The notes under the pieces are model-generated. The model saw only the letters and a list, made by a program, of their open reading frames with translations. It was not told the origin of the DNA and searched no databases. From the sequence record OR836606.1: a DNA stretch of 64,000 nucleotides; one strand, 5' to 3'. This document shows positions 1,951 to 45,873 of the stretch, one piece after another. The position numbers and the translations under genes were made by a program. Positions within the stretch are counted from its first letter, which is position 1, and each line of letters starts with the position of its first letter.

Positions 1951-1987
1951 AACATTAGTTTATAAATTAAAAAGGAGTGTTTTTAAT

Positions 1988-2326
1988 ATGCCATATTTTG
2001 TTTTAGATCCTCGTTCTTACATGGTAATTTATCATGCAGGACTTGTTGTTAAAGGTACTATCACTTTAGATGAAGTTACTGAAATAATGGGATTAAGAAA
2101 ATACGTTATTGAAGTTTTAGAAGAAATGGGTTATAATTTCGAATCAGGTAAAATCGAAGAAACTGAAGTTTTAGAAGAAATTGATCCTATTGAAGCGGAA
2201 CATATGGTTGATGAAGCTGTAGAAGATTCAGAAGTTCAAGGGATCGGACGAGCTACAGAAGTAGACCCTCAAGAAGAAGACCTTGAAAATCCTTCATCAG
2301 CTCAAGGCGGAACTTTGCCGCATTAG
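1988..2326 (+). CDS. Small tail-module protein with acidic tail; its last codons are duplicated downstream of omegaRNA cassette 1
   Basis: AAGGAG RBS before ATG at 1988; in frame with track ORF 1940..2326; ends GGTLPH*. Confidence 0.6.
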   Translation: MPYFVLDPRSYMVIYHAGLVVKGTITLDEVTEIMGLRKYVIEVLEEMGYNFESGKIEETEVLEEIDPIEAEHMVDEAVEDSEVQGIGRATEVDPQEEDLENPSSAQGGTLPH

Positions 2327-2428
2327 TTTTAATAACGTTAAATAACATGACAATTATTAAGTTACAATAACCAAGTAACTTAAATCACAAGGGGAGGGCT
2401 GAGCCCTTAGACATATAATAGTGTCAAC

Positions 2429-2611
2429 ATGGTTATCTGATGTGAAGCGTTTATATGACTCATATATATATAAGAAGATTATAAATGAATTGATCTAAGC
2501 TAATGTATCTTAGTACAGAAACCGAAAAATCCAGTTTAAAACTGCTACAACAATTAAGTTAATTGATTTTAATTATATTGTTGTAAAATGTTTTAAACGC
2601 TATGAGATTTT
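2429..2611 (+). ncRNA. Stand-alone TnpB omegaRNA scaffold, copy 1
   Basis: Near-identical to the reverse complement of 53616-53807, which lies directly 3' of tnpB (shared ATGGTT.TCTGATGTGAAGC, GAATTGATCTAAGCTAATGT, AGTACAGAAACCGAAAAATCCAGTTTAAAACTGCTAC, TATGAGATTTT); no tnpB adjacent. Confidence 0.8.
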
Positions 2612-2774
2612 ACAGCTGGAACTTTACCTAATCAGTAATTCTTATCAACGTTAATTAAATAAAGAAAATAGAACATATTTATATGAAAGTTATTTACATA
2701 AATATCTTTCATACAATTTCTTTGTTCTTGTCTATCTTTATTCTTTTTTCTTTTAATTTTGGCAAAGTCTTCAA

Positions 2775-2812: not shown

Positions 2813-2898
2813 ATTTTAACCCAGAAATTTGTAAAAAGCATCAATTCTATTAAAGAAACAAAGTTTTATAATAAAAAATAGGATGTGAAAAATAAATT

Positions 2899-3396
2899 AT
2901 GAAGGATGATAATAATAAAAACAATAATAGAGAAGATAATTTAAGTGTTGAAGAAGCAAATAGTTTAGTTATTAGATTCTATTATTTTCTTAAGCAGTTT
3001 AAATATTATATAACTCCTATTTTCTTATCTGTTTATTCTTTAGTTTATGGCTTCCAATTTGTTTTTCGAACAAGAGAAGCTTATAGAACATCAGATATTT
3101 ATGTAGCCATTTCCCATTTTATGGACTTAAGAACCTATGGTTTATTTTTAATTATTGGCGGATTATCCATATCAGCTTCACTATTCTTAGATAATTTTAT
3201 GACTAAACCTTTAATGACTATAGGTGCGTTTATTAACTTCGCTCTATTTTTAATATATGCTATTATATCTATGGATATTGCAGGTATGCAATCAACTATA
3301 ATTTTAAAAATTTTCATCTCTTTTTTAAATTTCTTCTTTGCAGTATTTACAATTCTTGAAATGAGAACGGAATCTATTATAAATGGAAGAAAATAA
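2899..3396 (+). CDS. Multi-pass membrane protein in lysis region
   Basis: 165 aa with about four hydrophobic segments, upstream of holin. Confidence 0.65.
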   Translation: MKDDNNKNNNREDNLSVEEANSLVIRFYYFLKQFKYYITPIFLSVYSLVYGFQFVFRTREAYRTSDIYVAISHFMDLRTYGLFLIIGGLSISASLFLDNFMTKPLMTIGAFINFALFLIYAIISMDIAGMQSTIILKIFISFLNFFFAVFTILEMRTESIINGRK

Positions 3397-3940
3397 TAGA
3401 AGATTGTATGAAAATAATAGATCCATAACTGAATTAGAATTACTAAAGTCAAATAATTCATTGAAAGAAGAAATTGAGGAGAAATTTGATAAAAAAATAG
3501 ATGAAGTTAAATCCGAGAGTCGAAAAATGAGTAGCACTTTAGTACGTGTAGAAGTATTACTTGAGAATATGGGTAAAAACACCGAAGAAATTAGAAAAGA
3601 AATGAAAGAAGATAGAGAAAATAGAAAAATTGAAGAAGAAGAAAGAAAAAGAAGACATTATGAATTAGAGTCACAGATACATTCTGTTAAACAGGAATTA
3701 AATCAAAATGTTGAACAAGTTGAAAGAAAAATAACTAGTGACATACAAGATTTAAGATTAGGTTTAGACAGTAAACTTAATATAGAAGACTTTGAACTTG
3801 AGTTTAAAAAAATTGAAGAAAGTTCTAATGATGAAAAAGATAGTAAAACTTTTAAAAGAAATTTATTTGTCAATGTAGTATCTTTAATATTGGCTCCTTC
3901 AGTAATCTTAGATATAATTAGAAGAATATTTGGAGGATAG
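3383..3940 (+). CDS. Coiled-coil protein with C-terminal transmembrane segment (lysis-associated)
   Basis: E/K-rich heptads, hydrophobic C-terminus LFVNVVSLILAPSVILDII. Confidence 0.6.
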   Translation: MEENNRRLYENNRSITELELLKSNNSLKEEIEEKFDKKIDEVKSESRKMSSTLVRVEVLLENMGKNTEEIRKEMKEDRENRKIEEEERKRRHYELESQIHSVKQELNQNVEQVERKITSDIQDLRLGLDSKLNIEDFELEFKKIEESSNDEKDSKTFKRNLFVNVVSLILAPSVILDIIRRIFGG

Positions 3941-3955
3941 ATTTAAATATTTATT

Positions 3956-4513
3956 TTGATAAAAAGGAGAAATGTTAAATTGAAAAAAAATTTAAAAATT
4001 GGTAAAGATAAATATATTAATGTATTACTTAGATTTAAAAATAAAGCGTGGACAGCAGCTTTATTAATTCAATTAGTCAACGTAACTATTTTCTTAATTC
4101 GTGCTTTTGGTGGAGAAGTTTCTGGTGATACTGAAACTAATATTTTAAGTATCGTACAAGTTTTAGCAGGTGTCTTATCTAGTTTAGTTGGTCGTTTTGT
4201 AGATAGTACAACTGAAGGTTTAGCTGACTCTGAACGTAACTTAGTTAAAAGTAGTCCTACTACAAATAGTGAAAAATCCCTTCAAGCAATGGACTATGAC
4301 GGTAAAATTCTCCCTCCAGTGAAGCCTTTTTTGGAGCAAGAGAGCAACCAAGAAACTACAAACTTACCAAAGGGTCTAGAAACTTTCGATAATGAATATT
4401 TAGAACATCAAGTTTTTGTGGAAGATGATGAAGGATTAATTGAATCAGTTGTTAGAGCTGATGCTAACTACAATCCTGAAATTTTAGGTGGAGGATCCGG
4501 CGGTGATCTTTAA
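3956..4513 (+). CDS. Holin, phiLC3-like family, with long acidic C-terminal tail
   Basis: LRFKNKAW...two TM segments...VDSTTEGLADS matches the RFKNK..W / DPTT.G.SDS pattern of LC3-type holins; true start may be a TTG near 3980. Confidence 0.75.
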   Translation: MIKRRNVKLKKNLKIGKDKYINVLLRFKNKAWTAALLIQLVNVTIFLIRAFGGEVSGDTETNILSIVQVLAGVLSSLVGRFVDSTTEGLADSERNLVKSSPTTNSEKSLQAMDYDGKILPPVKPFLEQESNQETTNLPKGLETFDNEYLEHQVFVEDDEGLIESVVRADANYNPEILGGGSGGDL

Positions 4514-4623
4514 CGGCAATATTTTTATTAACGTTAAATAACATAACAATTATTAAGTTATAATAACCAAGTAACTTAAATCATAAGGGCGAGCTGAGTC
4601 CTTAGGCGCATAATAGTGTCAAC

Positions 4624-4802
4624 ATGGTTCTCTGATGTGAAGCATTTATAAAGATCTTTCTATTAAATTAATAGGAATAACTTTATAAATGAATTGATCT
4701 AAGCTAATGTATCTTAGTACAGAAACCGAAAAATCCAGTTTAAAACTGCTACACAATTTTTAATTATATTGTTGTAAAATGTTTTAAACATTATGAGATT
4801 TT
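4624..4802 (+). ncRNA. Stand-alone TnpB omegaRNA scaffold, copy 2
   Basis: 5' half (ATGGTTCTCTGATG...GATCTAAGCTAATGT) identical to the IStron copy on the minus strand near 53727-53807; same TATGAGATTTT end; no tnpB adjacent. Confidence 0.82.
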
Positions 4803-4847
4803 ACAGCTGGAGGATCTGCTGAAGATCAATCAAATTAATATATTTTA

Positions 4848-4880
4848 CGGTAACATTCATTAAATTGAATGTTACCGTTT
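4848..4880 (+). terminator. Rho-independent terminator
   Basis: CGGTAACATTCA / TGAATGTTACCG 12-bp stem followed by TTTATTTT. Confidence 0.75.
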
Positions 4881-4933
4881 ATTTTATAAAAAATTTTAAT
4901 ATACATATAACGTTATTATTATAAATATACACT

Positions 4934-44375: not shown

Positions 44376-45677
44376 TTAATCTTTATCTACTTCTATAGCA
44401 TTCTTATCAGAATCATAATAATTGCCATCTGAACCTAGCCAAATATCTTCTTCTTTATTAACTAGTTCAACTAATTCTAATTCTTCATTATCTAAACTAG
44501 ATTCATGTTCAATATTAGCTAAGAATTTTTCTTTATAGATACCTTTAATATAATTATCAAAGTATTCTTTAAAATCTTTATTTTCATTATATTTGTCTAA
44601 GAAAGTTTTAAGAGTGAAACTAACATCTTCATAGCCATCAATACGATAAGCTCTTGGGTTACCTTTAAGCATTTTTTCACTTTGTAAAAATAATAGATTT
44701 GATAAAGCATTATTAAAACCATTCTTTTGTTCAAAGATTAAATCAAATTTAGCACCAGCTGCATTTGAACGTGATTTAATAACTTCAACTGTATTGATAA
44801 AACCTTTAACTCCGTATTTAGCTTGATTAGAATTACCTTCTGGATCTAAAGCTTGTGATGGACTAATCTTAAACATATTATTTGCCATATAGTTGATTGC
44901 TTTACCACCTGGTAATGCTTCACCTTGTTTAAGATAATTTAATTCTTTAGGTGTAGCTGCATAAGGATTAATATCAATTTTAGTTGTAATGTGATTAATT
45001 AGAATAAGCATAATATTAGCTGAATTCAATGTAGATGAACCGATAATACGTTTAATGAATGTTGTATTATCTTTAGCTTGTTTGGTCGCATTCATTTGAC
45101 CACCCTCACCATCTTTATCATCAATCTCTTTAGAAGCCATTGTGGCAACAGAGTCAATAATAACTACTGTTGGAGCCATGAATGAAACTTTCTCTCCAGT
45201 TTCCGGATCAATTTTATCTGTATGGATAGTGAATTCTTCTTCATTTTCCAGTTTAGTATCACGTATACCACGAATTAACTGATCCACTGAATCTAAACTA
45301 ATCTTTTTATTTAATTTAATGTATTTTTCTTGTTTCATTTCCTTAGACCAACCTGTTACTTGATAAATACGTTCATCAGTAGTCGCATCTTCAAAGTCAT
45401 AATGAATAACACTTGAATTTTCATATTTTTCAACAATTCTTGCTGCCGCTTGAATGGCAAGCGTTGTTTTACCTGAACCTGATCCACCAATAAAGGTAGT
45501 TACTTTACCGCCCATTAATCCAATACGTTCATCGTCTGTAACAGTGTTCAAGAAACCATTTCTATAATCTAATAAATTAATCCCTGATTCATACATAGGC
45601 GTATAATTATCTTCTTTCCCATATACTGATGGATTTGATTTAATCAAATCATTAATTTTGCTCGTTAATTTTGACAT
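44376..45677 (-). CDS. RecA/UvsX-like recombinase
   Basis: GGSGSGKTT Walker A, VVIIDSVA Walker B, LPGGKAINYMA. Confidence 0.85.
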   Translation of the reverse strand: MSKLTSKINDLIKSNPSVYGKEDNYTPMYESGINLLDYRNGFLNTVTDDERIGLMGGKVTTFIGGSGSGKTTLAIQAAARIVEKYENSSVIHYDFEDATTDERIYQVTGWSKEMKQEKYIKLNKKISLDSVDQLIRGIRDTKLENEEEFTIHTDKIDPETGEKVSFMAPTVVIIDSVATMASKEIDDKDGEGGQMNATKQAKDNTTFIKRIIGSSTLNSANIMLILINHITTKIDINPYAATPKELNYLKQGEALPGGKAINYMANNMFKISPSQALDPEGNSNQAKYGVKGFINTVEVIKSRSNAAGAKFDLIFEQKNGFNNALSNLLFLQSEKMLKGNPRAYRIDGYEDVSFTLKTFLDKYNENKDFKEYFDNYIKGIYKEKFLANIEHESSLDNEELELVELVNKEEDIWLGSDGNYYDSDKNAIEVDKD

Positions 45678-45873
45678 TTAACATTCACACTCCAAAAAAT
45701 ATTTAATACTATAACGTTATTTATTATACCAAATTTTTTATAAAAAAGCTAGAAATTTTCCTTAGAAATTAAAAGTTTTTTCTAAGTACATAAAGTCAAT
45801 ATTCACTTATAAAATAAAGAAATTAAATTTAAATAAAAAGATGCAGTAAGTGATATCATTAATATAGTCATAA

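Follow-up and report, generated by a model that had tools for sequence, protein, structure and literature searches.

In ISDra2-type elements, the 5′ portion of the guide RNA (omegaRNA) overlaps the 3′ coding end of tnpB. The IS607-family IStrons CboIStron and CseIStron, which combine a group I intron with tnpB, carry the guide RNA in their right end, where multiple stem-loops and a closing helix adjoining the guide are found, and they show a G-rich TAM, to which the motif at the terminus of the right end is similar, though distinct (10.1101/2023.11.20.567912; PMC13521648). The omegaRNA of such an IS607-type IStron contains five stem-loops, the 5′-most of which (SL1) is not needed for cleavage (PMC13521648). 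Derivatives that are short and non-autonomous, with the ends retained but no ORF, have also been described, either as ORF-less IStron-end derivatives in C. difficile (fig. S3 of 10.1101/2023.11.20.567912) or as PATEs, which are of the IS200/IS605 type, have palindromic ends and are mobilised by TnpA-Y1 (10.1101/2023.11.20.567912).

The window analysed here comprises positions 1-64000 of the Staphylococcus jumbo phage LY01 (OR836606.1, 258,897 bp), which together with its relatives (MarsHill, Madawaska, PALS_2, S6, SA1, AH12, PB50, UFV_DC4 and Machias) belongs to the AR9-like phages. Two direct repeats of ~290 nt (~2328-2619 and 4524-4810, 88% identical) are present in this window as nuclease-less guide-RNA cassettes, hereafter cassettes 1 and 2 or the orphans, and a third, partial copy of the repeat forms the right end of an IStron that interrupts the phage gyrA (55607-53608, minus strand). 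Both cassettes start with a shared leader (2333-2428 and 4529-4623), which we consider rather likely to be a 5′ region of composite origin in two IS607-like TnpB elements, related to IStrons, that have lost tnpB by internal deletion. The cassettes would keep a complete and structurally constrained omegaRNA gene, probably used in trans. The features needed to follow this proposal are:

53608-55607, minus strand: IStron in gyrA, with a group I intron, an intact tnpB and an omegaRNA right end
55044-53824, minus strand: tnpB of the LY01 IStron, intact, 406 aa
2333-2390, plus strand: part 1 of the cassette 1 leader, with the shared 16-mer and the orphan-specific hairpin A, probably a left-end remnant of the parent element
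2357-2365/2375-2383, plus strand: stem of hairpin A in copy 1, perfectly paired (RNAfold)
2389-2408, plus strand: hairpin B, predicted conserved 5′ stem-loop of the omegaRNA, in which the final tnpB codons and the stop survive as a vestige (stem 2389-2393/2404-2408, RNAfold)
2410-2425, plus strand: hairpin C, predicted conserved omegaRNA 5′ stem-loop, 5 nt before the core helix (stem 2410-2414/2421-2425, RNAfold)
4529-4623, plus strand: leader of cassette 2, with hairpins A (4553-4579), B (4585-4603) and C (4605-4620)
4553-4561/4571-4579, plus strand: stem of hairpin A in copy 2, perfectly paired (RNAfold)
53843-53825 and 53824-53810, minus strand: hairpins B and C of the IStron, as far from the core helix as their counterparts in the orphans

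The LY01 guide RNAs are similar to those of CboIStron and CseIStron in their location in the right end, in their multiple stem-loops with a closing helix adjoining the guide, in their 5′ peripheral stem-loops, a type that can be dispensable, and in a putative G-rich TAM accompanied by a similar but distinct motif where the right end terminates; the group I intron and tnpB are likewise combined in the gyrA element. The TAM-like motif of LY01, GGTG(G), is similar to two sequences of IS607-type IStrons, their TGGG TAM and their TCGG scaffold end. Unlike those elements, however, the two LY01 cassettes lack the intron core and tnpB and reside in a lytic jumbo phage without tnpA, the LY01 TnpB is distantly related, and the TAM-like GGTG(G) is deduced from four junctions. 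In comparison with PATEs and the ORF-less IStron-end derivatives, the cassettes are also short and non-autonomous, with ends kept and no ORF, whereas they differ from PATEs in that the left end is recognised by a weak similarity, no transposase is found in LY01, and the whole omegaRNA gene is retained and embedded in a late operon.

The TnpB of the gyrA IStron shows RuvC and zinc-finger motifs, with the expected Pfam domains present, and it is only distantly related to characterised TnpBs, the best matches outside its family being ~30-40% identical. A scan with one genome per species retrieved only relatives of ~30% identity, and a word search retrieved the metagenomic IStron L035; the family is found elsewhere only in Machias (89% aa identity, no intron) and L035 (64% aa). 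The LY01 genome contains six tnpB genes of three families, five of them in the two families other than that of the IStron, and these paralogues were ruled out as a source of the leader, since neither their 3′ ends nor their right ends are related to it. One gene of the second family (tnpB 62350-63483; element 62090-63622, minus strand) has a right end terminating in TATATAGCAG, after which a short peptide is encoded that is similar (E-I-E/R-I) to the C-terminus of the gene preceding the element. Neither a serine Resolvase nor a Y1_Tnp transposase domain was detected in LY01 or Machias, the two genomes searched, so that any spread of these elements must use nuclease-stimulated recombination.

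The two copies of the leader are ~86% identical when aligned, share an exact 16-mer at 2333 and 4529, and are predicted by RNAfold to form hairpins A, B and C in both cases, in agreement with an earlier note on this DNA. Folding z-scores of -1.9 (copy 1) and -3.0 (copy 2) were obtained for the leader, and of -3.9 (cassette 1) and -3.7 (cassette 2) for the whole cassettes, which fold far better than their shuffles. Between both copies of the leader there are 10 substitutions and one indel, and the five substitutions mapping to stems (one in A, one in B and three in C) all preserve pairing. The three in hairpin C had already been pointed out; those in A and B, each from G-C to G-U, behave in the same way, hairpin A being tested by just this one substitution. 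An enumeration of all the single changes in the leader stems indicates that pairing is kept by 17.5% of all changes and by 53% of transitions, and the chance of five pair-preserving changes out of five is 0.0004-0.04, depending on the assumed share of transitions. The evidence that this provides for selection on the predicted leader structure since the copies diverged is modest but real, and a leader constrained in this way is probably part of functional guide RNAs.

Five members of the family (both orphans, the LY01 IStron, Machias and L035) could be anchored on their invariant first core helix, where GGTT.TCTG pairs with CAGAAACC. Two adjacent hairpins, 1-2 nt apart, are located 4-5 nt upstream of this helix in all five. 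The stem of hairpin B is of the AAGGG/CCCTT type in the orphans, of the GGGG/CCC type in the LY01 IStron and Machias, and a 7-bp AGGTTGT/ACAACCT stem in L035, and that of hairpin C is formed by GACAT or GGCGC with GTGTC in the orphans, by GATTTT/AAAATC in the LY01 IStron and Machias, and by GTTTTA/TAAAAC in L035. The occurrence of B and C in every member with different stem sequences indicates that they are ancestral 5′ stem-loops of the omegaRNA, kept by compensatory change, and not an orphan-specific structure. The previous description of the three hairpins as absent from the IStron copy therefore stands for the first ~58 nt, with hairpin A, but not for B and C, which have equivalents in the IStron, Machias and L035. 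In the IStron and Machias, the final six tnpB codons together with the stop make up hairpin B, and hairpin C begins at the stop, an overlap like that of ISDra2-type elements, whose omegaRNA is of a different family and fold; in L035, instead, both hairpins are found just after the tnpB stop codon. In alignments, the orphan hairpin B still corresponds to the region of the tnpB stop. Since SL1 is dispensable in a related IStron, conservation of B and C does not prove a need for them, and by analogy their role may lie in processing or stability rather than in catalysis. The conserved B-C stem-loops would define where the guide RNA of this TnpB family begins at its 5′ side.

Downstream of the leader, the cassettes contain the following features:

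2431-2611, plus strand: core omegaRNA scaffold of cassette 1 (RNAalifold consensus), 91% identical to the IStron right end
2612-2619, plus strand: right-end terminal octamer, ending in CTGG, common to both cassettes
2620-2639, plus strand: guide of cassette 1, the natural sequence after GGTGG in sister phages
4626-4810, plus strand: core scaffold and terminal octamer of cassette 2, the core 97% identical to the IStron right end
from 4811, plus strand: guide of cassette 2, located by empty-site alignment
2306-2332, plus strand: junction region of cassette 1, compared with the empty sites of MarsHill, PALS_2, S6 and SA1

The RNAalifold consensus of the core comprises 60 pairs, 12 of them with compensatory (covarying) changes. 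The orphan cores are 91-97% identical to the right end downstream of tnpB in the LY01 IStron (measured from the core helix to the GATTTT end), 92-93% in Machias and 75-78% in L035. A sharp step follows in the 45 nt with hairpins B and C, where identity to the IStron falls to 62-71% (62% for cassette 2), although the orphans are 88% identical to each other there. The earlier note was right in sensing a separate module. The simplest account would be a descent of the orphans from another lineage within the family, with a later recombination that homogenised their cores with that of the resident IStron. In the case of cassette 1, the apex of the long stem-loop (~2456-2479) has lost pairing and 9 nt with respect to cassette 2, the IStron and Machias, which could be either tolerated variation or early decay. 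This degraded apical stem, together with the lack of tnpA in the phage, which leaves the ends without a transposition role, and with the presence of the cassettes in a single genome, would be expected if they were inert relics, that is, decaying right-end fragments left by deletions, carrying a functionless leader whose inherited structure has not yet been eroded. We regard this explanation as doubtful, because all five stem changes in the leader preserve pairing, the core helices of cassette 2 are all intact and its core is nearly identical to an active-looking IStron right end, and both cassettes lie within late units and carry guides identical to alleles of the sister phages.

Those guides can be read from the empty sites. 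GGTG(G) is found directly 5′ of the guide-matching sequence at the four right-end junctions compared (site 1, site 2, gyrA and the Machias locus versus AH12; empty alleles of MarsHill, PALS_2, S6 and AH12), and it is from these four only that it is taken as a TAM-like motif. As the natural GGTG(G) precedes every right-end junction, the guides starting at 2620 and 4811 correspond to uninterrupted alleles of the sister phages. Comparison with the empty site of MarsHill gyrA reveals that the IStron is a simple insertion after GGTG. In the case of cassette 1, the junction at 2306-2332 consists of a G-rich TAM-like motif and 6 nt identical to the natural target, followed by diverged sequence that provides the last codons and the stop (2324-2326) of the ORF 1988-2326. 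Two observations bear on the reading of this diverged upstream copy of the target as an escape from self-targeting: PALS_2 naturally has a GGC variant of the TAM codon, and the diverged stretch also aligns to the 5′ end of the other cassette.

Several other observations were made at these sites. The IStron begins and finishes with the same TTTGTTAAC repeat, and short direct repeats of the natural target flank both cassettes (2306-2322 with 2612-2625, GG plus AACTTT, at site 1; 4490-4512 with 4803-4816, GG plus AGGATC, at site 2). Past the repeat of cassette 2, the bases at ~4497-4512 match site-1 sequence of the PALS_2/S6 type (GGCGG...ATCTTTA), which suggests that cassette 2 was copied from a site-1 cassette with its 5′ flank. 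In Machias, an intron-less TnpB element (L021 1740-3221 vs L046 120-500) takes the place of almost all of a 127-aa gene present in AH12, with a canonical right junction (natural GTGG) and a left side that is a deletion reaching a terminator. Moreover, a 43-nt stretch 87% identical to the omegaRNA core at 2467-2511 occurs in sisters without cassettes (L048, MarsHill 170583-170625; S6 123551-123593; PALS_2 249640-249682), at the start of a small ORF with an RBS and an ATG, and it may be a relic, a source or a coincidence.

The origin of the 5′ part of the leader is the weakest link of the argument. The best match of part 1 is the first ~80 nt of the IStron, beginning at its very first bases, although the similarity is weak: cassette 2 scores 25 against the IStron start (null 12.1 +/- 2.6 over 3117 windows of the LY01 genome, one of which equals it) and cassette 1 scores 16 (p=0.03). 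When the first 60 nt of the IStron are used as the query, the border of cassette 2 ranks second genome-wide, but it is not outstanding with 30-40 nt, and other windows of this AT-rich genome score nearly as high, which argues against a left-end origin. In the IStron and in cassette 2 alike, a stop codon is found two codons after GGT G, and the match runs out close to a CACCA motif, ~77 nt from the element start (within 55607-55520, minus strand), which could pair with the GGTG exon end in the manner of an internal guide sequence. The first 20-30 nt of part 1 also resemble the natural site-1 sequence (for cassette 2, p=0.004 against LY01 and not significant against MarsHill), which makes the origin of those bases ambiguous. 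The region 2317-2390 was also considered as a degenerate 3′ coding end of tnpB and rejected, as it aligns locally to the 3′-terminal ~135 nt of each of three tnpB genes no better than shuffles do (p 0.4-0.97), with homology only from hairpin B onward. Considered as ORF-less derivatives of an insertion sequence, the cassettes thus have a clear right end and a modest left-end similarity, with copy 2 among the top one or two windows and copy 1 at the p value given above. Part 1 is probably left-end debris of the parent element. Its closest resemblance is to the 5′ end of the IStron itself, so that an internal deletion explains the anatomy of the leader more simply than a new module does. The earlier note had named a leader that is the 3′ end of a tnpB ORF or a piece of an intron as grounds for giving up its reading, and this is largely what was found.

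The leader was not found elsewhere by blastn in 50,697 phage records, in five whole sister genomes (where a match in AH12 is low-complexity AT-rich DNA) or in plasmids, nor by exact patterns in IMG/VR, where 19 matches to the 16-mer are unrelated, or in metagenomes; in the collections searched, the cassettes are carried by LY01 only. No match to Rfam was obtained at the gathering threshold or at E<=1-5, a result that is uninformative, since Rfam seems to be without a model for this omegaRNA lineage.

With regard to expression, late promoters of phage AR9 follow the consensus AACA-N6-T[A/G], and examples with non-standard spacing have been reported (PMC5312081). The signals around the cassettes are:

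1951-1962, plus strand: AR9-type late promoter consensus upstream of the ORF 1988-2326, which would co-transcribe cassette 1
2857-2868, plus strand: AR9-type late promoter consensus upstream of the operon 2899-4513, which ends in cassette 2
~2776-2815: terminator hairpin downstream of cassette 1, annotated as a terminator in MarsHill
4847-4878, plus strand: natural terminator of the holin operon, downstream of cassette 2, annotated at the same place in MarsHill

Both cassettes are therefore located between the stop of a late gene and a natural terminator and need no promoter of their own. There is no terminator between the upstream ORF and the cassette, and the promoters upstream and terminators downstream suggest that the cassettes would be 3′-UTR extensions of late genes, mirroring the way in which normal omegaRNAs ride on the tnpB mRNA. 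A scan of the leader for sigma-70-type promoters gave no site, with a count no higher than in shuffles, and the exact AACA-N6-T[AG] consensus is absent from both leaders, where only the variants AACA-N7-TA at 2344 and 4540 occur.

The motif TAACGTTA of the leader had been proposed as a phage promoter element, and it does recur upstream of rusA and of the gene 44376-45677. However, its five occurrences (1.15 expected) include the two cassette copies, which leaves four independent sites and a marginal excess; one site lies within the gyrA coding sequence, and the motif departs from the late promoter consensus of the AR9 type. Upstream of rusA and of the gene 44376-45677 (433 aa, minus strand), it is part of a longer ATAACGTTAT context (4900-4925 and 45705-45730) that is missing from the leaders and precedes each of the two start codons by 40-50 nt. 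The rusA copy of ATAACGTTAT is conserved in MarsHill, and the sequence may represent a variant of a phage promoter element.

Transcription from the N7 variants would start 1 nt before hairpin A, and late promoters with irregular spacing are on record; hairpin A is, moreover, orphan-specific and perfectly paired, and the stem substitutions preserve pairing. All of this could be expected if the leader had evolved as a stand-alone expression or stabilising module, with an internal phage promoter just before hairpin A, which would protect the 5′ end, for example against a 5′-3′ exonuclease; the guide RNA would then no longer depend on the upstream gene. Such a module seems improbable to us, given that the N7 motif is short, frequent in AT-rich DNA and of non-consensus spacing, that consensus promoters are already present upstream without any terminator separating ORF and cassette, that a single substitution tests hairpin A, and that TAACGTTA is off the promoter consensus; a promoter or stabiliser role for part 1 is possible but unsupported. 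In a bolder form, which we would call a long shot, the orphan cassettes would be evolved stand-alone guide-RNA genes, in which a variant late promoter and a 5′-terminal hairpin A allow TnpB-independent expression and 5′ protection, whereas B and C mark the site of processing or loading, so that the one TnpB of the phage could be armed with extra guides against sister-phage alleles. If true, such cassettes would be an intermediate found in nature on the way from omegaRNAs bound to a transposon to free guide genes, and would act as a guide-only homing or exclusion drive.

The most likely pathway, that of internally deleted elements, implies a left end joined by a deletion to the last tnpB codons and the right end. 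The 5′ ~58 nt of the leader (16-mer and hairpin A) would most likely be a left-end leftover beside the deletion breakpoint, and the 3′ 40 nt (B and C) would be ancestral omegaRNA stem-loops that overlap the last tnpB codons and stop in intact elements. Transcription would start at the promoter at 1951 or 2857, continue through the ORF or ORFs and the cassette, and finish at the natural terminator, and the transcript would fold into a complete omegaRNA. Finally, the single matching TnpB, that of the gyrA IStron, would plausibly process and load the cassette RNA in trans, this IStron being the likely source of a TnpB acting in that way. The analysis shows the sequence anatomy, the conservation of structure, the preserved pairing of the substituted stems, the empty sites and the placement within transcription units, while we infer the left-end origin of part 1, transcription, processing, TnpB loading and any cleavage. 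The idea of a dedicated module that replaced the tnpB coding region is not supported: the 3′ 40 nt of the leader are ancestral omegaRNA stem-loops, hairpin B retains a vestige of the tnpB stop, and no promoter was found in the leader. The leader is nonetheless structured, as had been suspected, and its stems appear to have been kept by selection since the copies diverged.

A last point is related to the meaning of these cassettes for the phage and for the TnpB family. What was suspected to be a new RNA module becomes a testable and mostly familiar one. The cassettes of LY01 suggest that a complete guide gene can survive, structurally selected, without its nuclease gene, in the late operons of a lytic jumbo phage that lacks a transposase. 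If their RNAs are loaded in trans, LY01 would offer a compact natural system for guide-only homing or for phage-phage exclusion by TnpB.
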